Assembly (NCBI RefSeq): GCF_963853765.1 | Contig: NC_088858.1 | Span: 41,602,001 to 41,666,000, forward strand | DNA from: Magallana gigas | Taxonomy: Eukaryota | Reading direction: 5' to 3' | DNA length: 64,000 bases | Shown: positions 4,405 to 19,500 of the stretch, in pieces | Position numbering within the stretch: position 1 is the first letter of the stretch | Layout: every line of letters begins with the position of its first letter | Translations under genes and position numbers: made by a program | Notes under the pieces: generated by a model | Databases searched by the model: none | What the model saw: only the letters and a program-made list of their open reading frames with translations | What the model was told of the DNA's origin: nothing

Positions 4405-7400
4405 AATGATTTTTACATCACATGTAATGGGAAAATTGTCCAGAGACATGAAGAGATTAAGGAAGGAAATCTTTATCGGATTGTTCCCAGATTACTTGGT
4501 GGCAAGGGAGGTAAGATTTTAAATCATTTTTCTTATTCAGTAAACATGTACTATATTTATTTGCATGCAAAAATTATTCGAGAGGTTCATGAGAACCTCG
4601 TTTATGCAAATATTTCTCGCTGCAAACCGGTATTTAAATATTTCTGATATATTATTTTCCAGATAATCTATACATTTTTGTTGCAAAAATGAGTCATGCA
4701 AACCAGTATATATCTGGTCAATCACAATCTAAAGTTTTTGCAAATAAAAGTTGTTTTTTTACCAATCCATATGATAAACACCACAACAACCCCTTGAACT
4801 AAGTCTACAGACATTTTTAAATCCTTCCAAGGGGTTGAAAGGTGATAGGAAGTTGATTTTCAAAAAGCGAGATCATTAATATTTATATATTGTGGGGTAT
4901 GGATCATTACCAGAATTTACCATCAAATCACTTCCATTGCCAGCTTCAAATGCTCAGTTGGTTATCAGTATGTTCCTGACTTGAGTCTTGTCCAGTAGTT
5001 TTCTAAGAACATAGAGGATTGATATAAGATGTTGGTTTTTGTTAATTTATATAGGGTTTGGTTCAATGCTAAGGGCCATTGGAGCACAGATTGACAAAAC
5101 AAACAACAGAGAAGCCTGTCGAGATCTCAGTGGACGGCGGATGAGAGATGTTAACAATGAAAAGCAGTGAGTATTTGATTTTATAAACAACAGCATATCT
5201 TCATAAAGTTTTCTGTGCAAATACACAAATACATGAAATTTAATTTCACCCAGGAATAGAGTAACTTTAATTTCATGTTTTGAATTAAAAATTTTTAAGG
5301 CTTAAAGAGTGGGTTGCAAAAAAGGCAGAGAAAGAAAAAGAGCGAGAAGAAAAGAGAAAAGAAAGAATGGAGAGAAGACGAGCTGTACCAAACCACAAAT
5401 TTGATGACCCTCTTTATGATAAGCAAAGAGCAGTTGTGGCAGAAAATCAAGAAGATGCTCTCCAGATTGGTAAATTGTCACTTTAAAATCTTTGAGAGAT
5501 TCGTATGTCTCCACTGTGACTTATCATTTAAACAATAAAGTACTCTTTTTAGTGGTTCATGCAAGTATGAAAATAGTAAACATTGCAGAAATAAATAAAT
5601 TATTTATAACCTTTAATATACATGTAATACATGTATTACATTTAGAGTTGACTATGGTATATGGAAACATAATTATTTTTAAAGAAAAAAATTATCTTAG
5701 AGCTGCAATAATGTCATCTTCGCTAGCCAATGGTTTTCAGTCCACTCTGCTCTCCATAAATTTATGGGGTGCGGAGTGGACCGAAAACCCTTGGCTAGTG
5801 AAGATGCAATAATGAACAAATATTTTTTTGGTGGGGGGGGGGGTCAGGTTAAAAAAAACTTGGAGATGGCTACGTTATTCACGTTATTATAGCCACATCA
5901 TGTATTTATTTGATTATATAGCTCTAACACAGACAGGATCAATGGGTGTCAGAAAAAATACAGTTTTGAAACAAAAATATTTGAGAATTCTTCTCCACTT
6001 GCAAGAATTACATTGCTTGTGTTTAAAGAAATTTATTATGAACTCTGCTGATGCAGTAAAATAAAGCCCTTTGTCCAGTAATTCAGACAATATTAAATAT
6101 GACTTTATAACCGTAATCACCTCTAATACATGTACTGTAAATGTGTTATTACCCGAAAATACATAGATTGAAAGATTAGATAGAATTCAAATGTCTTTTG
6201 ATATTTTTTAGGACTACAACGAGCGCAAAGTAAACAAAAAGCATCTTGCACTATAACATCGGAGGAAGAGGCAGGACCTTCAGGGAGTGGACTGAAACGA
6301 AAGTCGGAGAGCAAGGGTGGACCCTGTAAAAAAGCAACCAAACACAATGAATGGTACATATTTTGTGTTTGTCTACCGGAAAAATCAATATTTTATCTAT
6401 CCATTTCAGAGGTTGTAACATTGTTTAAAAATAGTGTCACAAGATCACATACAGAAAATGTGCAACTTGTCATCTGATTGGTAAAATAAAAGTTCATTCT
6501 GACGTCACATAACATAACCCTGACTGGGTGACTGCCTGATCTCTTTGCACAGAGAGATCTGTATCTTAATCAGAATATCATTATAGATACATTAACCAGT
6601 ACATAATTAAGAATTGAAGCTCTGTTAGTTGACCATAAAAAAAAACAACTTGATGTACTCTGACCTTTAAATTTTTTAGGCTTGGAATTGACATTGAAAA
6701 TTTAAGTGACTTAGACAGTGAAGAAGAAAGTGACTCATCAAATAGCGAAAAGTCTTCAGAGGACCAAAGTGTCAGTTCTAGTAGCTGCCAAGAACAGACT
6801 GAAGCCACCAGCATTGATCCTTCCCAAAACACAGCCTCAAAATCACAAGTGACCCCAGATAGTGAGATGAACGTGGAGGAAACTCGGCAAACATCCTCTG
6901 ATTCTTGCAAGGAGTCTAAGCAAGAGAGTACAGTTGGTCAGACAGACAGTGGAGGTCAGAGTTCATCCTCCAGCAGCAGCACTGTAGAACCAGACAAAGG
7001 GTCAACAGAGACACAGGTGAGTCGGTGTAATTGATGCATTGACAAGTCCTCTGATTTGTCACTCTGAAAGTATTTTGCTTTATTTCATTACCTCCCTGCA
7101 AATTTCATGTAATCAATTGTGTTAAAATGTTACTGTATCGATACATGTATATTCACCAGTATTTCTGATATGTAGACACACTTGTAATTGTATTCTTGCT
7201 GTTTCTTCTACACTCGTAGGCAGTTGGTTGTAAATGTCACACCTCATTGAAAATGCATGAAATGAAATATGCAGAATAATATCGCTTAATTACTTCAGCT
7301 GTGGTGTTTATTGGAGTCCACACACTTTGTAAACTAGAATTTTGATATGCGTAAAATCTATACCCGATATGCACTCAAATTTAAATAAAAATGCAATATT

Positions 7401-9518
7401 TTATTGAAAAATTGTAAAAGATAAGGCCACATAAAATTAATTCTCTGGTTCTCAGGCCAAATTTTCCAAAATTAGATGAGGGAGGGAGGATTTTTTTTTT
7501 CTTTTTTATTGTTAAAAAAACAGATGAGGGAGGCTTTTTTTTATTTGGGAAAGAAATTAACTACCTAAAGTTAAAAAAAAAACCAAGATTTTCTTTATTC
7601 AAGCAGCTGTTTTATTATTTAATAAGGATAGCTATTAAATATTTTAACAGATAAAAACACCCCCAATGTATGTTTGAAAATACAGTCCAACTTTCAAAGT
7701 ACAACAATGATATTTAATATTTAGATCAAATGAAAAAACCTCTATTTTTTTTTTATAAGTGAACTGTTTGTTTTCATTTTGTCTGCTTCTTTGCTGTGGA
7801 GCTTTGAACATCCTTCTGTTTTTACAAAGCTGTCGTTGTGAAACAACACAATCATGACATATTGGGTACTGTCCTTCTTCTGTATCTGTGTCTTGTGTCC
7901 AACAGTGATAGCATATTGGGGGAAATACACCAGAGCTGTACATGTAGTAGGGGATCTGAATTGGAGATGCACAGGCTAAATTTGATGTCATATATTATAC
8001 TTTCTACAATGGGGCGCATATTGAGGGTGCTTTCTCAGGATTATAAGGTTCTAATTCCTGAAGTTCAGATCAACATGAAAACTGATAAAGTCCAATGATT
8101 TTTGTAAGCAAGGTACTTTCTTGGGCACCAAGTTTAGTAGCACTATATAACTTATAAGACTCTGGGTTTCTGGCAATCTATGCAGGTTCCCATTTGTTTC
8201 ACTGTTTTGGCAGTCTGAGCAGATAGACTAAATTGAATTCCATGTCTGCTTGCAGTTGATTGTGCTCATTTTGATGATAAAGAAGGACAGTGTTCCTCTG
8301 TAGTATCGGTTCAAAAACCTCACTGAACTCCTTGTAGTATCCTTCTTATCCTTTAATAAATGACAGTCATTTAAAAATAAAGAAAAATATCAATCCACTT
8401 TACAGAACGTAAAATGACATATATGATGTTTACTCTAAAATACCTGGCACTGGATCAGGAAAGTTGTGTAACTGGCTAGAGATATCATTATGCATTGCAA
8501 TCTCGGGGCCAATAATATCCGACAGTTACTGGGACCACATTTCTTCACAGTTAACTTGAATTAAGAAGCAAGTTAAGAAGTTATCGTTAAACCCCGCAAG
8601 TTTATAATGGTTAAAATCGCGGCGTCCAAACTGTTCTTGTGTTTGCCAACTGACAAAGAAACGAAGGCACCAAGTAATTTTTCTGGGGAGGTCCAACTTT
8701 TCCAATCGAATTTTATCGATTTCACGCCCTCGTACAGGTTTAACAGACAACATCCATCGGAAAAACTCTCAATTATATTCCACGGTAGAATTAACAGGGT
8801 TTCATGGCAGATACAAATCGAAACAGCAGACATTTTGATTCGTTTTAAGTCCAAAATTTCCATCGACCTCATTTTTACTAGTATCGTCTATATCATCGGG
8901 AGGTTTGGATCATAAAGTTTTTACTTAAAAAAATAAGCGACTTAATGATTAAGACTACACCGGAAGCTGCGTATTAGAAACGAAAGTAAAACTATATGCA
9001 AACCGAAAGCGGAAACTTTTTTTTTTCCGGATAGGTCTCCGCATTATCAACTTTTTATTTTATTGAAAATGCAATAAAATTTGCAATGCGGCACCCTCAA
9101 AATGGATGGGCGCGGGCCTGAGAACCGTAATTTCAATTTTATTTAGCCTAAATGAAATGGATTTATTTCTATGATTGTTAAAAAAGACATTGATGTACAT
9201 GTATTCAAATTTTTTGACAAGTTACTGTAATTCATATAGAACAAATTATCAAGATATTTTACTGTATAATATGTATACTTTGTTACTCTTTTTTTTCAGG
9301 AGGACAAGCCATTTGACTTCGATGACTACAGCAGTGCAACAGATATGGAGGTTTTGGGACTTGAGAAATTGAAGTCTCTCCTGATTGAAAGGGGGATGAA
9401 GTGTGGAGGAACCCTACAACAACGGGCAGAGAGGCTGTTCTCTGTCAAAGGACTGGACCCAAAGGACATTGATCCATCATTGCTTGCCAAACCCTTTAAG
9501 GGGAAAGGAAAGAAATAA
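4405..9518 (+). CDS. SDE2: Replication stress response regulator / splicing factor SDE2 (5'-partial model)
   Basis: Exons 4405-4510, 5055-5166, 5300-5469, 6212-6353, 6680-7016, 9300-9518 (1086 nt, frame-consistent, all GT-AG). They encode the ubiquitin-like end PRLLGG|[39 protein letters not shown] (SDE2 signature with di-Gly cleavage site), the WLG acidic region and the C-terminal [29 protein letters not shown] domain. The first coding exon was not identified. Confidence 0.93.
5715..5806. mobile_element. 92-bp fully palindromic micro-MITE in an SDE2 intron, 9-bp TSD
   Basis: Arms CATCTTCGCTAGCCAA... and ...TTGGCTAGTGAAGATG are 46 bp each with 6 mismatches and no loop. Flanks CAATAATGT and CAATAATGA. 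The TIR is the same as at 62708-62788. Confidence 0.85.
7424..9149 (-). mobile_element. DNA transposon relic with ~35-bp TIRs carrying a decayed transposase-like C-terminus (SDE2 intron)
   Basis: Left TIR AGGCCACATAAAATTAATTCTCTGGTTCTCAGGCC (7424-7458) matches the reverse complement of 9115-9149. Flanks ATAA and TAAA resemble a degenerate TTAA. Confidence 0.7.
7750..8350 (-). pseudogene. Frameshifted, stop-interrupted Cys-rich transposase-like C-terminal fragment
   Basis: The minus strand, read across frameshifts, gives [92 protein letters not shown], with several CxxC motifs and at least 4 in-frame stops. It lies inside the TIR pair. Confidence 0.7.
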
Positions 9519-10979
9519 AAGAGAGAAAATAAAAATTTTACAGGCTTAATGATATGATGGAAGATGGAAATAGAAAATAGCAAGTAGAGCATGGGCTTCT
9601 GCTGCTACAAATGACTTGGTATTTAAAAATGGGTAAACATGCAGCAATACATTACAATTCCTATGCTTGTATTCTTCATGTTCTTTGAAACATTTTCATA
9701 TGCTAAATGTGTTATAAATATGTACATCATGTCAAAAGGCTTACACATATGCCAGTACATTTACTATAATTGTAAATCATCTTGTGAAACTCAAAAAAAA
9801 ACTTCACAAAATGCTATAACACAAACACATAATATCAATTGCTTCTGCGCCTATTTTCATATTTTGATTTTTTCGATTTTGAGAAAAAAGTTCCTCTATT
9901 TCATATCTTGCATTTAAAGAAAATGCATGACTTCTGCATTGAAGTTTTGGCCTAAAAAGGTAGAGATTGTGTTATCTTATAATGTATTTGTTCTAAAATG
10001 CACATACATGAATATGTACATTTTGTAAGATTGCTTCAAAATTTCATAGCCCATCTTTTGTGGAGGAAATCAAAACTATTTGGTGGAGTTGTGGTTTTAA
10101 AGTATACTGCCATGTTTTAACTGTGAAATGTTGTTTGATGATGTCATTATAATAAATTTCTAATATGTACATGGATAATGAATCATTGATTTGAATCCTC
10201 TGGAAATAAAATAAATTTTATATGTAAATCAGGGTTTTGTAATTTTATAAGACATACATGTATATGGTGTTAACAAAAGAATGATGGATTGATAACAAGT
10301 TGTTTTACATACATGTGAAAATATTTCAGTTGTAGTGAAAACTAGTACAGGATCTTTATTTACACCTAAACTGCTTTGTTATAAATCAATTTACTTGGTC
10401 TTATACCTTTAGATATTCCATATTCTTATCATCATAATGCTAAATTGAATTTTGATTAATATCTCTTTAAGTGGTATATTGGACACCCTTTATAGATATT
10501 AATTAATTTAGGTGAAAGTTGCATGTACATGTATTATTGATGTTAAAATTTTCAAAATGTACAATTTTTGACCATACAATACATTTTAAAAGTATTAAGA
10601 AAGGAAATATTGTAAAAGCTCCAGTGGTCTTAAACTTATGTCATCCAGATAAGTAGCCAACATTTTATTCTTTTATGCTCTACTTATACATGTACTGTTA
10701 AACTTGTTTAGTACAAATACAGATGTAGCAAAATCTCAGATGTAGTGAAAATTTAAGGGAGTCACCTCTATAGGACATACCTAAAATATTTTTAAAAAGT
10801 AGTGTGTTGATTTTCGTTAGATATTAATAATTTAAATGAAAGTTTACTAAGGTAAACATTACTGAAATGGTCTGCACACCTTCAGGTTACCACAAAGGCC
10901 CACAGGCCTCTAACATGAAACCGAAAGTAGCTACCTAAAATTAACCTTGACTTGTTTTGCATATTGAAAGTAAACAAAA

Positions 10980-13900
10980 ATGGCAACCTCCGTAAGATCA
11001 CTTGGCTTAGGAATAAATCGTGTCCTTCTTCGGTCGTTGTGTAACCCTGTCGTAAACAGCTGTCGCACATTCAGGGTGAGTGTGATTTCCACAAGATGCA
11101 ATATAATTTTGGTATAAACTAAAGACGTTTGATCTCCATATGGTACATCTTATGTGTTATCTAAGGTATGATTACCCTAAGGTATTAACTTGAACTGTAT
11201 TTAGACGAGATTTAATAGTGCTGTAGACATATATTTCATTTTATTCTCTCAAATAATAACACAAAAGTTCACTTAAAATGTACAAAGAGAAAAAGTCGTA
11301 AAAATATAAAAGGGCATGGAATAAAAATTGTGTATGAACGTGCAATACTGTACCTGGTATGAAGTCGTGAGCTCACTTAGAGATGTTATAGATGTGCATT
11401 TAAAGATCTCAAAGACAGTTTCTGAAAGTCTCATGTTGATATCATATCACATATTGGACATAACCAACCAAGTCAAAGGCATGTTGGACAATGAACAACA
11501 ATCATCCCCCTTTACCAATTTTATTTCTTTTCTTTTTTTTCTTTTTTTTTTGGGGGGGGGGGGGTTGTATTCCCAATGTACATTACATGTTCTAAACTTA
11601 ACCATATTAAATATAATCTGCAGTTGAATAACCTATGCCAGATCAGTAGAATGGAAGATCATGTAATGGCGCATATGTAATTAATTTTCAGATTGGAGAA
11701 AAAATCCCACCAGTAGAATTGTACCCAGAGGACACCCCAACTAAACCACTGAACGCACAGGAGCTGTTCAAAGGAAAGAAGGGTGTTCTGTTTGCAGTGG
11801 TGGGTGCCTTCACTCCCGGGTGTTCACAGGTAGGTGACTACAAATATATATATGATATAAGCTCTTGAGTCTTCTCTTACTCATATTGCTAATTCCCTCT
11901 GATGCATAACAAATTGCAATTGGTTTAGTGGAGTCAGGTGAATATGTAGCACGTGTTAGTTACCAATATACTTTACAACTATTGAATCTGATTGAAATCA
12001 AGAAACAGGTTCAGATATCTGATTAAAAGATATATTCAAGTGAAGAGTGTAAATTCTCAGTCTTCAATGCTGTTTACCCACTTCCTTAAGGCTGAACACT
12101 ACTCGTATAAGACATAGTCTGCCATATTTCTCTTTCATCACCGCTATCCCTACAACCCCTAATTAAGTCACAGACCTCTAAACAGTTCAAAGTATTTTAC
12201 AGAAGTCTATCGTCGCAATGAAATTATGAATTTTTTACGCACTTTTCCAAGCCAGGAGAAAACTAACATCAACTATATATAAGTTAATGCATTATTATAA
12301 TAATTTACAAACAGAAAATGCACATAAAACAAAAACATGAAATAATGCACACAATCTAAGACTACGAAAGGAATACTACACTTCAGTCACGAGTTTCAGT
12401 TGTGCAATTGGGTGAAACAAAATCGAAGGGTTTATATACCTGTAATACAGTACTTATTAAGAAAGGTGTTCAGCTTTAAGTTCTAGAGAAATTTTTCTTT
12501 GAACCATTGAATTTTGACATTATTTTCAGATATTGTTATCTGTGTATATTGTACATCTACAAAGTAAACTACATTTTATTATTTTTCAGGCCCACATTCC
12601 TGAATATCTAAATAACTATGAAAAATTTAAGGTATGTATTAAAATCTATAAAGTATCTTTAAGTAATAAGTTAAAAATTATTATATAATGATATAACAGG
12701 AAGTCCCTCTGAGTCTCTAGTTAGGTGCTCTACCGACAGCGATAGAGCCGGTCTAACAGTCGCTGTCACACTGGTACATGTATTACACGTGACTCAGCCA
12801 AAACTGTCCGATTGCTGGTGCCAGATAGCTTAGTTGGCAGAGAACCTGACTAAATTTCAGGGGGTCCAGGTTAAACCTAGGTCTGTTCCATCATGTTAAT
12901 TTCTATCCTGTTACACTATTTGATAAATCAATCCATTTTGTTTTCAGATTTATCAAAAAGATATGAAATGCTATCATTTATGATTTACAAATCAATATAT
13001 GGCAAGCACGTGTTTCTACCAGTAAGTGTTTTTTACAGGAAGAAGGCTATGACATGATATGCTGTTTGGCTGTCAATGATCCATTTGTTATGTCTGCTTG
13101 GGCTGATAAACTCAAGACAAAAGGGAAGGTAGGTTGACTTTTGTTGTTTACACCATATTACCCGGGTATTTGTCAAGAATATTTTCTGCATGTAGATTAT
13201 AATAATACATAACATTTGAAAGTCTCATACATGTAAAATGATTTTGAAGGAAAGAGACAGAACGTTTGTTACCTGTGCTGTATACATTTACAATTGCTTC
13301 CGATATTAATTTTACGATTATACTTGTTTAAATACCTATGCACTTTCTGTTCGAATACTGTTTAATAAATTTGATTATTTAAAATTTAATTACCCCTTCC
13401 CCCTCCATAAAAGTTTTTTTTTTAAAGTTTATGATTTGAAACGCAAACATAAGTACATATATTATACAATGTTTAATATTGTTAAAACATGGCATTATAA
13501 AGAGTATTTGTCCTGCTGGCATATTTATTTTTAAATTCGGTAATGAAATATACCAGCAGAGCAGTAAAGATTCATAACATCATATTCATTGTAAAACATT
13601 TTACATCGCTTATGCGTAAAAATGAAGGGAGATACCACCACCTTTTATATGTTTGTGTTTTAGCACAACAAGTGTGATTGATTCAGTAAAAAAGTTTTAT
13701 CTAGTTGTTGTTCTATACAGATAAAGATGCTGGCAGATCCTCAAGGAAAGTTCACCAAAGCAATGAAAATGGATCTGGACTGCACAAAGCTACTGGGAAA
13801 TGTTAGATCGAAAAGGTGGGGCAGTGTACTCATTCAGTGATAATTACGGAATCATTGAGTGTTATGATGTGATCAAATACGGTCAGGGGTGATCAAATCC

Positions 13901-14421
13901 AATGAAGCCCAAAGGGCATTATGATAGATTTGCTCACCCTCAACCTTATTTGGTCATCTGATAATATCAAATAATGATTCCTTATTACTTGTATTTATAT
14001 TATTTTCATCAATTGCAAGGCTAATTAAATATTAGAATATTCATTAATGAAATGTATTGTGTTATTTGTTACAAAATTGATTTGCAGTTTAATCACAGAT
14101 AAAGACACTGGAGCATGTAAATATTTAACTAAAGAGCATGCTTGTACATTAAACTGGATTTAAAATCATTTTCTATGAATCATGATAATAGATCTTATAG
14201 GGTGTTACATAATTACTGGAAGTTCCTCCAAATTTATATGTTTGGCTTTGAAATGTTAGTTTTGTTAAGACAGCTCAGATTGTTCTGTTTTTGATAGATA
14301 CGCTCTGGTGATTGAGGACAGTGTCATCAAGAGTGTCAACACGGAGCCCGACCACACGGGCCTGGCCTGCTTACTGTGCATCAGGAACTTTAGGTCTGCC
14401 CAATCAGCAGGCGCCACGTGA
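10980..14421 (+). CDS. PRDX5: Peroxiredoxin-5-like protein, divergent paralogue with N-terminal mitochondrial-type leader (194 aa)
   Basis: Exons 10980-11075, 11692-11829, 12590-12631, 13039-13128, 13721-13815, 14298-14421 (585 nt). Motifs: [66 protein letters not shown]. Exon 1 is Arg/Ser/Leu-rich with no acidic residues (MTS-like). Confidence 0.92.
12090..12475. mobile_element. TTAA-TSD MITE (Kolobok-like termini) in a PRDX5 intron
   Basis: TTAA|GGCTGAACAC (TTAA at 12086-12089) ... GTGTTCAGCT|TTAA (12476-12479). Confidence 0.8.
12692..12915. mobile_element. Small element made of two inverted tRNA-like halves, with T(G/A)TAACAGGA termini
   Basis: TATAACAGGA (12692-12701) and TCCTGTTACA (12906-12915) are inverted termini. 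The tRNA-like segment GCCAGATAGCTTAGTTGGCAGAGAACCTGACT...GGTTAAACC (~12820-12880) has a partial inverted copy at ~12705-12740. Confidence 0.65.
13841..13987. mobile_element. Palindromic fold-back element in a PRDX5 intron
   Basis: TAATTACGGAATCATT...GGGTGATCAAATC is inversely repeated as GATTTGCTCACCC...AATGATTCCTTATTA around a central GCCCAAAGGGC hairpin. Confidence 0.7.
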
Positions 14422-15994
14422 TCTGTGCTGGGTGGTGCTGAGTGGTTCTGGTGTAAATGTGGGAGATTGAAAGAAGTGTGCGATTGTATGGTATTAAAGA
14501 GGATATTGATCTTGGGGAGAGCCTCGTACAACCTTGTGGAATTTACACAGCAGACACCTGTGACTTTCTGTTGGTTTTATTTATATTGTTGTATATTATT
14601 TCTACCAGTACAGGTCTCATTGTAAGGTGTTTTGTATATTTGGTAAAATAATCTAATTTGAATTATTTTTGTTGGTTTTATTTTTAAATGGATATGGTTT
14701 ATACAATGAATGACTGTCTTCAAAATTATGAAAACAGTTTTACTCATTCTCATGATATGCCTGCAGGTACAAGTGCAATGTGTATTATGTAATTTACCAG
14801 AGTCATTAATAAACTGGTGCTGTCAATTCAAAAAAAATTCTTCTGTATATTGAATATATTTTTAGAAATGTTCTTGAAAAATTGGAATGCTAAAAAAAGT
14901 GAGCTATTTAAAGTTTACAATTACTAGTAATACCATTTTCCTGACAACATTTCAACCATGTTAGGGTCAAAGAAATTTTAAAACACTTAGTTTTTAATCA
15001 TGATTAAGTGCTAGGATTTACATTGACTCCAGCATGATTGAGGGTAATTCAAGGACAACATACAATTTCTCCCCTACATTTTGTGTTAAGGTTTTAGAAG
15101 TATATATATGGAAAGCCAATCATAATTAAAATTTAAATCAATGTTTTGTACATCTTAAGGTTGCATAAACCTCCACACTAATTCTGTATATGTTTGTCGA
15201 CTTATTATTTAATATACATGTAAAAAGGCTTCAATTTTGTTCATATGGAATAGAGAGAAGTCCTTTGACGTAATTATTTGATAAATGTTGTTTTTTTTGC
15301 ATATGCATGCAAGATATTTTTTGAATTTGTAAATGAAAAATGTCACTAAAATTAAAAAAATTAAAAGTCAACAAATCAAGTCTGTCTGTTAGTCCAATCT
15401 TTCCGGCAATATCTCTGCTCTGGACAATCACTTGAAGTAAATATATCTACATCACACGAAAATCACTCATGACTTTATTTCCCTCTCATGTGTTTATGAT
15501 AGACGAAAAGGTAAAATTCTATCCAAAGATGTCTATAGATAAGCAACTAATGAAACTAGACAACATTGAGATCAGGTGATGATTTCAAAGGGCCCCACCT
15601 GAATAATGGACAATAGGATAAAACGAATTTCAGAGAATTTTGTGTTGACATTGACCTTAAAATTTTCCAGCTGGCATAGAACTTCTAATTCATATCTCAT
15701 TACCCTTTACATACAGGCATTTTTGTTCAATCTGACCAAGATTAATTAAGCTAGTGGGAAATAATCTACGGCCTACAACTGATTGTAAAGAGATCTGCTA
15801 TGACTTAATTTTTTCACATATTGACTTGTTTGTAGGTCACTGCTTGCCATTAACCAAAAAGCTCTGTTTAGGTAATTAAAGTATTAGCCAAATAGGGCTA
15901 AGTGGAGAGTATATAAATGCTCTTCAAAAAAGGATGTTTGTATGATCTGATATGACCTTGGCACTTGACCTACAAACATATCACGGTTCCAATT

Positions 15995-16516: not shown

Positions 16517-19500
16517 ATGGCCATCGCAAGCGAAAGTGATGGTAAAAAACACTTGATGTCCTTTCCTCCAGAACGTATTGGGCATGTAGCAGTTTGTAAT
16601 GATAAATACATGATCGTGTGGGGAGGTTACAATGTGAGTATAACTTATATCGACACAGTCAGTCAGTCACACGTCGAGTTTGAACGTTGTTGTCTTGAGG
16701 CTTGGGGTAAAATGCTGACGATGGACCCTCCACTTTGGAGGGTCCATAGTGGAGGGGGTGGAGCTTGGTGTGTCAGTCTTAATTCAGAGTCCGTTTGATC
16801 TATCATTCCAATTTAGTTATTAAAAACAGAATGGGGCACATTGTTTTATTTATATGACTTTTAAACACTTAAATACACTCATTTAGGTGCTGGGTTTTTT
16901 AAAAGTACATATTGTTCATTAGTTCTACACAAGAACATTGTCGCCGAAAACAATCCGCATTGTAAATACATATTTTGCAACTAAGCTGACACTCTTGGTG
17001 ACTTGGAATTTGGACTCAGATATTTCCGATAATCACTGGTTGAGAACAAGATCATTGGGTGGTTTTCTTAATTTTTCTGTAAATAATTGTCCACATCCAT
17101 TTTTTTTACATGTACTAAATTAATATATTTACATTTGTTACTCGGGGAAAAAAGATGAATCTCTCTCAACGTTGAGGTGAGTTAACTTCCTGTTCACAGT
17201 CTCACTGGACTCAGAATAATTGTTACACAAACATAGAGTAATTTATGTATTCTGATAAAGTTCATTTGAAGTTGCTAAATTCATTAAATGTTAGGAACTC
17301 CCTCTCCTTTTTTTAGCTCACCGAGACGAAGTCAGGGGGAGCTTATGCTATACCCTCGGCGTCTTATGATACTGATGCACCAGACAGGCTTGGGTGCTGA
17401 ATCTGAGCTATAGGTTACAGATGCTGAAGGAGGTTAAGGTTTTTAGAGCTGGTTAAAGTTTTTGTTGCAGGTGCCCTCTGATGATTATATCTTAGTTACT
17501 ACTTGTCCTAACTTCACCAGACTTCCATGGATGGTGCGTCTTACGATACTGATGCACCAGACAGGCTTGGGTGCTGAATCTGAGCCATAGGTTTCGAATG
17601 CTGGGGGAGAATAAGGTTTTTAGAGCTGGTTTAAGTTTTTGAAGCAGGTGCCCTCTAATGATCATATCTTAGTTATTACTTGTCCTAACTACACCAGACT
17701 TCCATGGATGGTGCGTTTTATTATACTGATGCACCTGACGGGCTTGAATGCTGAGTCTGAGCCATAGGTTTCAGATGCTGGATATGGTTAAGTGTTTTTG
17801 AACAGGTCACATGTTTAATAGATAATAGTACGGTACTATTTCAAACTTGCATAGTTGATTAAACTGTTATATGAATGAATCACAGAGGAAGCTTCAGATG
17901 CAGAGCTTGATCTCCATTATCAAGGATGCAAAAAAATATATCTTAGTTAATACAGGTCCTAACTTCACCAAACTTGAATGGATGGTGTGTCTTATGATAC
18001 AGATGCACCTGACAGGCATGGATGTTGAATCTTAGCCATATTAGGTTGCGGATGCTGGAGCAGGTTAAGGTTTTAATTGCTATTGCCCTCTGATGATAAT
18101 ATCTTAGTTATTACTGGTCTGAACGTCACCAAACTTGCATGGAGATGCGTCTTATGTAAACTGATGCACCTGACAGGTTTGAATGCTGAATCTGAGCCAT
18201 AGATTTCCGATGCTGGATGAGGTTTAGTTTTTTTGGCACAGGTCACATGTTTTGTAGATGATAGCTTGCATAGTTGATTTAACTATATTATTAATGAAAC
18301 ACAGAGGTTGCTTCAGATGCAGAGCCTGATCTCCATTATCAAGGATGCTAAAGAAATCTCCCACCTCACTCAAACCTGCTCGTTAGATAGATGTGTTTGT
18401 TGATAAATGATATAACATGATTCCTATGATATAGTATTGTATGGTATGAAACAATATTGTTTAATATGATACAATATAATATCATATGTAATATTATAAA
18501 AAGTGATATGATACGATATGATATTGAATCAATTTTTTAAATATTTTTTGTTATGATATTGTAACATGATATTGTTATGTATAGTATTGTATATTATGAT
18601 ACAATATTGTATAATATTATATTGTATTATTAATTTATTATTTTATCACATGATACTATTACATAAGATATTGCTAAATATAATATTGTATCCTATGATA
18701 CAATATTGTATATTCTATAATATTGTATCATACGATATTGTATAATATGATATTAGTTTCTGTAATATAGAATTATATCACATGAAATTGTATAAATTGA
18801 TACTGTAATATTATATAATATCGTATCATACGATATTGTATAATATGATTTTGGTTTATAATATGATATATTATCACATCACATGAAATTGTATTGTATG
18901 ATATTGTAAAATATATTATTGTATCATATGATACAATATGTATAATATAATGTTGTATTATATATTTTACTTTATCACATAATATTGTACCATTTGATAT
19001 GATACAATGATTTATCAAATTATATTGTATCATATGAAACAATATCATATTATGTTTCAAAAATGATAAGTATCATACAATATCATACTATATTATACAA
19101 TATAATATCATATGTTTCAATGTTATGATGTATTATGTTATATGATATTGTAATATAATACTATATTGTTTTATATATTATGATATTGTATTATGTGATC
19201 AAATACAATAATGTATAACACAATACAATGTCATACCATACGTTACAATATCATATCTCATCATTGTTTATCATGGTATTTTATTGTATTATATGATATA
19301 TGTTGTAAATGTGATAGGATGCAATATTTAATTTTATATTATTGTATTGATTGACATATGAACATATGATTATCATACAATTTTTGAACAGATGATATAC
19401 GATATATTGTGTCAAAACAGAATCCATGAATATCCAAGATCATAAAGTATGATTTTCATTTAATATGATAAAGGTGGTCTCATAAAGGTGAAGTCTCATA

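Follow-up and report, generated by a model that had tools for sequence, protein, structure and literature searches.

A peroxiredoxin-5 paralogue of the oyster Magallana gigas with a fixed non-proline active site and a CxxC at the resolving cysteine

In peroxiredoxins the active-site proline and arginine are described as absolutely conserved, with the threonine swapped only for serine (Poole and Nelson, PMC4749874). In human peroxiredoxin-5 (PRDX5), Leu116, Ile119 and Phe120 belong to a hydrophobic helix that makes ligand contacts beside the peroxidatic Cys47 (PMC13425361), and the mammalian enzyme occurs not only in mitochondria but also in the cytosol, in peroxisomes and in nuclei (PMC7971343). 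Here we describe a PRDX5 gene of the oyster Magallana gigas that departs from this pattern. It lies in a stretch of 64,000 nucleotides, referred to below as the window, which corresponds to positions 41,602,001 to 41,666,000 of the forward strand of contig NC_088858.1 (NCBI RefSeq assembly GCF_963853765.1). The locus is the oyster copy of an ancient, strongly constrained PRDX5 paralogue, which we call CLLC-type after the motif at its resolving Cys, and its active site has a fixed residue other than Pro.

The gene is on the forward strand and has six exons between 10980 and 14421. Its product of 194 residues is 100% identical to XP_011452621.3 (P0351), annotated in Magallana gigas as "peroxiredoxin-5, mitochondrial", which was taken as the reference for the spliced protein. 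The original prediction, made from the letters of the window, had placed the gene at 11692-14421. Five exons with AG/GT borders are found there and join in frame into 162 residues containing all of the motifs that it quoted, but the first coding exon (10980-11075) had been missed. Both the quoted motifs ([29 protein letters not shown]) and the tail SAGAT can be read in the window, and exon 2 matches the Pfam Redoxin family above the Pfam cut-off (E=2.9e-07). The paralogue is expressed and spliced as modelled. All five joints occur in contigs of two RNA runs, each with GT..AG borders (11075/11692, 11829/12590, 12631/13039, 13128/13721, and 13815/14298), and a single transcript contig of 1237 nt covers 10975-15052.

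Alignment with phmmer against the PDB places oyster Val69 opposite human Pro40 and aligns the last exon to the human Arg127 and Cys151 segments. Human residue numbers are our own count of the mature human sequence, which is consistent with these alignments, and on this map V69 corresponds to P40, T73 to T44, C76 to C47, C101 to C72, C143 to L116, R154 to R127, C178 to C151, and C181 to A154. As originally predicted, Pro is replaced by Val in VVGAFTPGC, whereas Thr73, the peroxidatic Cys76 and Arg154 (the catalytic Arg127) are kept, and the segment GLACLLC carries a new CxxC formed by the resolving Cys178 and Cys181. The oyster protein therefore has the Redoxin fold and, of the Prx5 signature (Pxxx(T/S)xxC and a distal Arg), the Thr, the peroxidatic Cys and the catalytic Arg, and lacks the active-site Pro. 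Human Leu116 lies in helix 116-120, a hydrophobic part of the active-site lining that contacts ligands next to Cys47, which puts oyster Cys143 in the active-site wall. Two of the fixed changes of the clade, those at the Pro40 and Leu116 positions, touch one pocket.

The codon of Val69 is GTG, two base changes away from any Pro codon, and two RNA and two DNA runs, each from a different study, show no other letter at 11800-11802. About 12 variants gathered in a 90% cluster, including M. gigas alleles, C. angulata, C. virginica and transcript assemblies, differ elsewhere in the protein; none of them touches V69, T73, C76, C143, R154, C178 or C181.

Relatives were collected by an exhaustive search with exon 2, followed by searches from the full-length proteins that it returned, and the exon 2 search itself yielded full-length relatives sharing Val and CLLC. 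A word search from the Saccostrea orthologue found bivalves, gastropods, cephalopods, a chiton and Solemya, and in all of the named molluscan matches the Pro position was occupied by V or L, in rare cases by I or M, and CLLC was present together with a long tail that is not of the type 1 peroxisomal targeting signal (PTS1) kind. In all non-molluscan matches of the same search, in contrast, VPGAFTPGC was accompanied by GL-T/S-CSL and a short tail. The original prediction had proposed looking by phylogeny for a second, canonical molluscan copy, and such copies were found. A search from the canonical protein of Lingula returned canonical PRDX5 in Saccostrea echinata, Ostrea edulis, Mytilus trossulus, the chiton Liolophura and scallops, and it is also present in M. 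gigas (XP_011455482.3, P0365), C. angulata and C. virginica. Because oysters, mussel, scallops and a chiton have a canonical copy as well, the CLLC-type protein is ruled out as the sole PRDX5 of molluscs. One otherwise canonical protein of the GLTCSLA type (P0383, ENA) has Ser at the active-site Pro position, the only non-Pro residue outside the CLLC-type clade among several hundred relatives, and may be a real variant or an error.

The evolutionary relationships of these proteins are represented by a maximum-likelihood tree of 74 sequences, in which 42 V/L-type proteins separate from 32 canonical ones with 100/100 support, and the stem of the V/L-type clade measures 0.98 changes per site. Molluscan canonical PRDX5 forms a clade of its own (96/93). 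The oyster paralogue falls outside it and is not orthologous to human-type PRDX5. A protein of the annelid Capitella teleta (CAPTEDRAFT_153829, P0377) was found in a third search and, in a second tree, fell on the V/L-type side of a split again supported at 100/100, where it groups with the metatranscriptome protein P0210 (92/70), the two together being sister to the 41 molluscan sequences (95/89). We considered a mollusc-specific duplication. In an approximately unbiased (AU) test, a tree that keeps all molluscan sequences in one group was not rejected (p=0.371), but the position of the Capitella protein inside the clade argues for an origin older than molluscs, and most likely the paralogue predates the split between molluscs and annelids. 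That oysters keep a canonical, Pro-type PRDX5 on the same chromosome marks the V-type gene as an old paralogue. In M. gigas both genes lie on one chromosome record of 56.9 Mb, and in S. echinata they share a chromosome at 37.95 and 27.43 Mb, 10.5 Mb apart. Four of the five intron positions are common to the canonical S. echinata gene, and each gene has one private intron. In the S. echinata orthologue, the intron before exon 4 (12436-13418 of record L001) contains an array of tandem repeats, about 60 bp in period, that carries at least 12 incomplete copies of the initial 42 nt of exon 4; the real exon follows downstream at 13437-13526.

The pattern of conservation was counted in the 74-protein tree, where the clade (n=42) spans bivalves, gastropods, cephalopods and a chiton and is compared with the 32 canonical proteins; the Capitella protein was added afterwards. 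At the Pro position, the clade has V in 28 sequences, L in 12, and I and M in one each, compared with Pro in 32/32 canonical sequences. The Thr position has T in 37, S in 2, N in 2 and V in 1 (canonical, T in 32/32), and the catalytic Arg position has R in 27 and K in 15 (canonical, R in 32/32). Cys76 is present in every sequence of both groups (42/42 and 32/32). Cys178, the resolving Cys at the human Cys151 position, is found in 42/42 clade members compared with 31 canonical sequences with Cys and one with V, and Cys181 is also found in 42/42, where canonical proteins have A or S. The Val and CLLC that the original prediction wished to see checked for conservation are therefore a feature of Mollusca as a whole and not private to one oyster, with the understanding that the first of these positions varies among V, L, I and M. 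The further Cys that it had singled out fared differently from each other. That of LDCT (Cys143) is conserved in 41/42 clade members, where canonical proteins have L, A or V, and sits in the active-site wall. ICC, on the other hand, holds one conserved Cys only, since Cys100 is variable, and the conserved one, Cys101, is invariant in both paralogues and hence equally present in canonical PRDX5. The clade as a whole departs from the Pro/Thr/Arg signature given in PMC4749874. The oyster protein has the diagnostic states of the clade (HIPEYL, EEGY, GL-x-CLLC-I, an extended basic tail, and no second start).

These features have been kept under strong constraint. Between M. gigas and S. echinata the ratio of nonsynonymous to synonymous changes (dN/dS) is 0.033 in the mature part, where dS is saturated at about 2, and 0.355 in the presequence. 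Protein identity between the two species is 84% for the CLLC-type protein and 87% for the canonical one, indicating that the CLLC-type paralogue is not evolving faster today. Molluscs have carried, for hundreds of millions of years, a copy of PRDX5 without the Pro that is regarded as invariant and with two extra Cys that are invariant or nearly so.

The two paralogues also differ in their targeting signals. Exon 1 encodes a presequence-like N terminus of 32 residues; by composition count, 5 of these are Arg and none is Lys, Asp or Glu. An internal Met four or five residues before the mature domain is found in 27 of the 31 canonical proteins that have an N-terminal extension, compared with 2 of 39 CLLC-type proteins, in which it stands at other offsets, and a strict PTS1 end occurs in 7/31 canonical and 0/39 CLLC-type proteins. 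In the oyster protein, residue 1 is the sole Met ahead of the mature domain, and the C terminus reads GAT; the predicted lack of a peroxisomal signal was accordingly confirmed, for the oyster and for its clade. Short forms of canonical oyster PRDX5, 157 aa long, are on record. Given the Arg-rich presequence, the lack of a second start codon and the lack of a PTS1-like tail, the CLLC-type paralogue has probably kept the mitochondrial route only. Of the suggestion that this is a mitochondria-only paralogue, the paralogue stands on a separate clade with 100/100 support and on the retention of a canonical copy, and the mitochondria-only part is a probable reading of these sequence features. Changed substrate access, alternative disulfide chemistry and metal binding, which the original prediction also suggested, may be regarded as hypotheses on its function.

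An AlphaFold2 model built from 73 aligned sequences has a mean predicted local distance difference test (pLDDT) score of 81, with values above 90 in the core (residues 31-170). A Foldseek search with this model returned, in order, 2xhf, Arenicola PRDX5 (2wfc) and human PRDX5, and the top 8 hits were all PRDX5 structures. The root mean square deviation (rmsd) of the model to human and Arenicola PRDX5 is 1.4-1.5 Å, and PF08534 is on record for the whole protein family. In the model, Cys178 and Cys181 are predicted to lie in the first turns of the last helix, and Cys143 would end the strand that precedes a short helix (144-147).

We propose that CLLC-type PRDX5 may be a mitochondrial protein with a peroxide-reactive Cys76, a remodelled pocket and a multi-Cys resolving relay, a proposal to which we give an even chance of being right. 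The protein would go to mitochondria only. In oysters, retention of Thr73 and Arg154 means that Cys76 would still react with peroxides, and the hydrophobic collar around it would be remodelled (Pro40 to Val and Leu116 to Cys), probably altering rate or substrate preference. The sulfenic acid formed on Cys76 would be resolved by Cys178, or first by the nearby Cys143, after which the disulfide would shift to Cys178-x-x-Cys181, where the last helix begins, and be reduced there by mitochondrial thioredoxin or glutaredoxin. Such a relay would free Cys76 early or hand oxidizing equivalents to partner proteins. Several points weigh against this proposal. The relay itself is deduced from the invariance of residues and their positions on the map, and the last helix (176-191), which carries the CxxC in its first turns, has a pLDDT of 40-59. 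All 15 Lys at the Arg154 position belong to one gastropod subclade of caenogastropods and heterobranchs, and all three annelid-like members, along with a few molluscs, have N, V or I at the Thr position. These replacements of Arg and Thr suggest that the function shared by the clade may not depend on fast peroxide reduction.

A simpler explanation, which we regard as rather unlikely, is that this is an ordinary mitochondrial PRDX5 isoenzyme in which Val fills the hydrophobic place of Pro with little effect, Cys76 and Cys178 act as a 2-Cys peroxidase reduced by thioredoxin, and the extra Cys serve stability or regulation, the duplication having merely split an ancestral dual targeting between two genes. 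The oyster protein does retain Thr73, Cys76, Arg154 and Cys178, the modelled fold appears unchanged from human and Arenicola PRDX5, V, L, I and M are hydrophobic like Pro, and the targeting signals are cleanly divided between the two copies. However, a Pro described as absolutely conserved in peroxiredoxins (PMC4749874) and found in all 32 canonical relatives has been lost in 42/42 clade members, which points to a fixed change and not to drift. Cys143 and Cys181 are invariant, or nearly so, across the phylum, which is hard to explain unless they have a direct role, and an isoenzyme of this kind would also have to accommodate the long stem branch of the clade (0.98) and the tolerance of Lys for Arg and of N, V or I for Thr in subclades.

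The same replacements can be read in the opposite direction. The CLLC-type protein may have left peroxide scavenging and no longer be mainly a peroxidase, its peroxiredoxin fold having been reused as a mitochondrial cysteine relay or sensor in which Cys76, Cys143, Cys178 and Cys181 would bind a metal or an iron-sulfur cluster or would transfer disulfides or persulfides. We consider this improbable, somewhat more so than an ordinary isoenzyme. It would account for a set of four invariant or nearly invariant Cys in a protein in which three of the four classical catalytic residues vary within the clade (Pro in 0/42, Arg in 27/42, and Thr or Ser in 39/42 members), with I or V at the Thr position in annelid members and a CxxC whose predicted place, the first turns of a helix, resembles that in thiol-disulfide oxidoreductases. 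If it were true, Pro, Thr and Arg would be dispensable, and this would make clear why annelids and higher gastropods have lost them step by step. Thr and Arg are strictly kept, however, in bivalves, cephalopods, the chiton and basal gastropods, which argues for selection on peroxide chemistry in those groups, and no metal-binding Pfam family matched any exon. In the folded state of human PRDX5, the peroxidatic and resolving Cys are far apart. A site made of all four Cys would therefore need a rearrangement.

We found nothing in favour of an artefact or a decaying gene copy, whether through a mistake in assembly or sequencing, a private polymorphism or pseudogene formation, and give this idea a negligible chance of being correct. 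An error or a private allele is ruled out by the GTG codon in the reads of all four runs, the identity of the protein in RefSeq and a non-Pro state shared with C. angulata, C. virginica, Saccostrea, Ostrea and at least 35 other molluscs, and the intact frame with spliced transcripts and the dN/dS of about 0.03 also speak against the idea. The sole gap in this evidence is 14141-14474, which the DNA contigs of two runs leave uncovered.

Coordinates of the features of the CLLC-type PRDX5 locus and its neighbours in the window are collected in Table 1.

Table 1. Features in the window (positions are those of the 64,000-nucleotide stretch)
Feature	Positions	Strand	Basis and remarks
Last exons of SDE2-domain gene	6667..9518		matched to S. 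echinata flanks
Exon 1	10980..11075	+	ATG open reading frame from upstream scan; in-phase GTGAGT donor; joint 11075/11692 in RNA contigs of X15 and X18
Exon 2	11692..11829	+	start of mature domain and active-site loop VVGAFTPGC; aligned to human PRDX5 residues 5-48
Val69 codon GTG	11800..11802	+	position of the conserved active-site Pro of the family (human Pro40)
Thr73 and peroxidatic Cys76 codons	11812..11823	+	Thr73 at 11812-11814, Cys76 at 11821-11823; codon mapping
Exon 3	12590..12631	+	14 residues; HIPEYL segment diagnostic of the clade; joints in RNA contigs
Exon 4	13039..13128	+	[19 protein letters not shown]; holds Cys100 and Cys101
Exon 5	13721..13815	+	3' end is two bases of the Arg154 codon
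Cys143 codon TGC (LDC motif)	13781..13783	+	human Leu116 position, by offset mapping and alignment
Exon 6	14298..14421	+	first base completes Arg154; non-PTS1 tail
Cys178 codon	14368..14370	+	in exon 6
Cys181 codon	14377..14379	+	in exon 6
Stop codon TGA	14419..14421	+	in exon 6
3' untranslated region	14422..15052	+	to the limit of the RNA contig; X18 record 16 spans 14296-15052
First part of Kelch-repeat gene	16564..16639		matched to S. echinata flanks

The neighbourhood of the gene is shared with S. echinata, since SDE2 lies upstream and a Kelch-repeat gene downstream of the paralogue in both species. A tandem duplicate in the window was ruled out, as tblastn of the product against the 64 kb found one copy only, and ARAGORN found no transfer-RNA-like stretch in intron 3. 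At 11007, where the window has T, all four runs have C; the site is position one of the codon for Leu10, within the presequence, and with a TTR codon the difference leaves Leu unchanged. In intron 1, a long T-rich run followed by about 13 G (11515-11571) is where contigs of all four runs stop, and the read analysis passed over it as a repeat. The stretches 11970-12470 and 13807-14140 are high-copy repeats, with summed word depths in the DNA runs of about 1,400 and about 11,900, flanks at a depth of about 10, and many loose ends at the repeat borders; both are probably fragments of transposable elements, in introns 2 and 5. The stretch 14141-14474 is without a contig in both DNA runs (X14 and X9); both RNA runs cover the last coding exon with zero differences. 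Both DNA runs also have a weak joint from 13426 to 14636 (side 21), and the missing coverage may be a filter hole or a repeat-induced break. Three proteins of the oyster cluster in Logan (P0356, P0357, and P0361) are 155 and 175 aa long and begin either within the presequence or at the first residue of VELYPE. They have the look of starts chosen by an open-reading-frame caller on partial transcripts and not of real isoforms.

The protein sequence is already known, being listed in RefSeq and UniProt under a generic name, and the structure of an annelid relative has been deposited. We found no paper naming the protein, the paralogue, 2xhf, K1PVC4, XP_011452621 or the missing Pro, although the literature searched is poor in shellfish-immunology and subscription journals and is weak evidence of absence, and the one paper citing an oyster PRDX5 accession cites the canonical copy (PMC4527670). 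The gastropod subclade with Lys for Arg and the occurrence in annelids were not part of the original prediction. Since both oyster genes are annotated "peroxiredoxin-5, mitochondrial", they are easily confused in expression studies, and reports on "PRDX5" in oyster stress or immunity may mix two proteins with different predicted targeting and probably different chemistry. The clade also amounts to a natural experiment in which Pro has been replaced phylum-wide under strong purifying selection, with Arg or Thr also replaced in subclades, and it offers a way to ask what role Pro and the hydrophobic collar play around the peroxidatic Cys. The added Cys in the active-site wall, together with a CxxC at the resolving position, suggests a resolving or relay pathway that can be tested.

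Comparison with the known systems places the oyster protein close to human PRDX5 (PDB 1HD2, 3MNG, and 1OC3) in fold (rmsd 1.4 Å, TM score 0.87, 45-46% identity), in the positions of Thr, the peroxidatic Cys, the catalytic Arg and the resolving Cys, in its N-terminal extension of mitochondrial type, and in its six-exon gene. It differs from human PRDX5 in having Val for Pro40, Cys for Leu116 and Cys for Ala154, the last of which creates the CxxC, and in having no internal start, no PTS1 of the SQL type, a longer and variable tail, and a place in a separate clade. The canonical oyster PRDX5 (XP_011455482.3) is on the same chromosome, belongs to the same family and also has a presequence-like N terminus, but it is only about 45% identical to the paralogue and has VPGAFTPGC, GLTCSLA, an internal MPIK start and a short tail. 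The best match in both sequence and structure is 2xhf of the annelid Alvinella pompejana (185.6 bits, 56% identity), which shares Val at the Pro position, HIPEYL, EEGY and GLACLL with the oyster protein but has Ser at the Cys143 and Cys181 positions and Val at the Thr position; the deposited chain also has Ser at the peroxidatic position, natural or engineered. The Capitella protein, in turn, resembles the clade in HIPEYL, EGY, CLLC, a long tail and the lack of an internal start, and differs from the oyster protein in keeping Pro, in having Ile at the Thr position and in having Ser at the Cys143 position.

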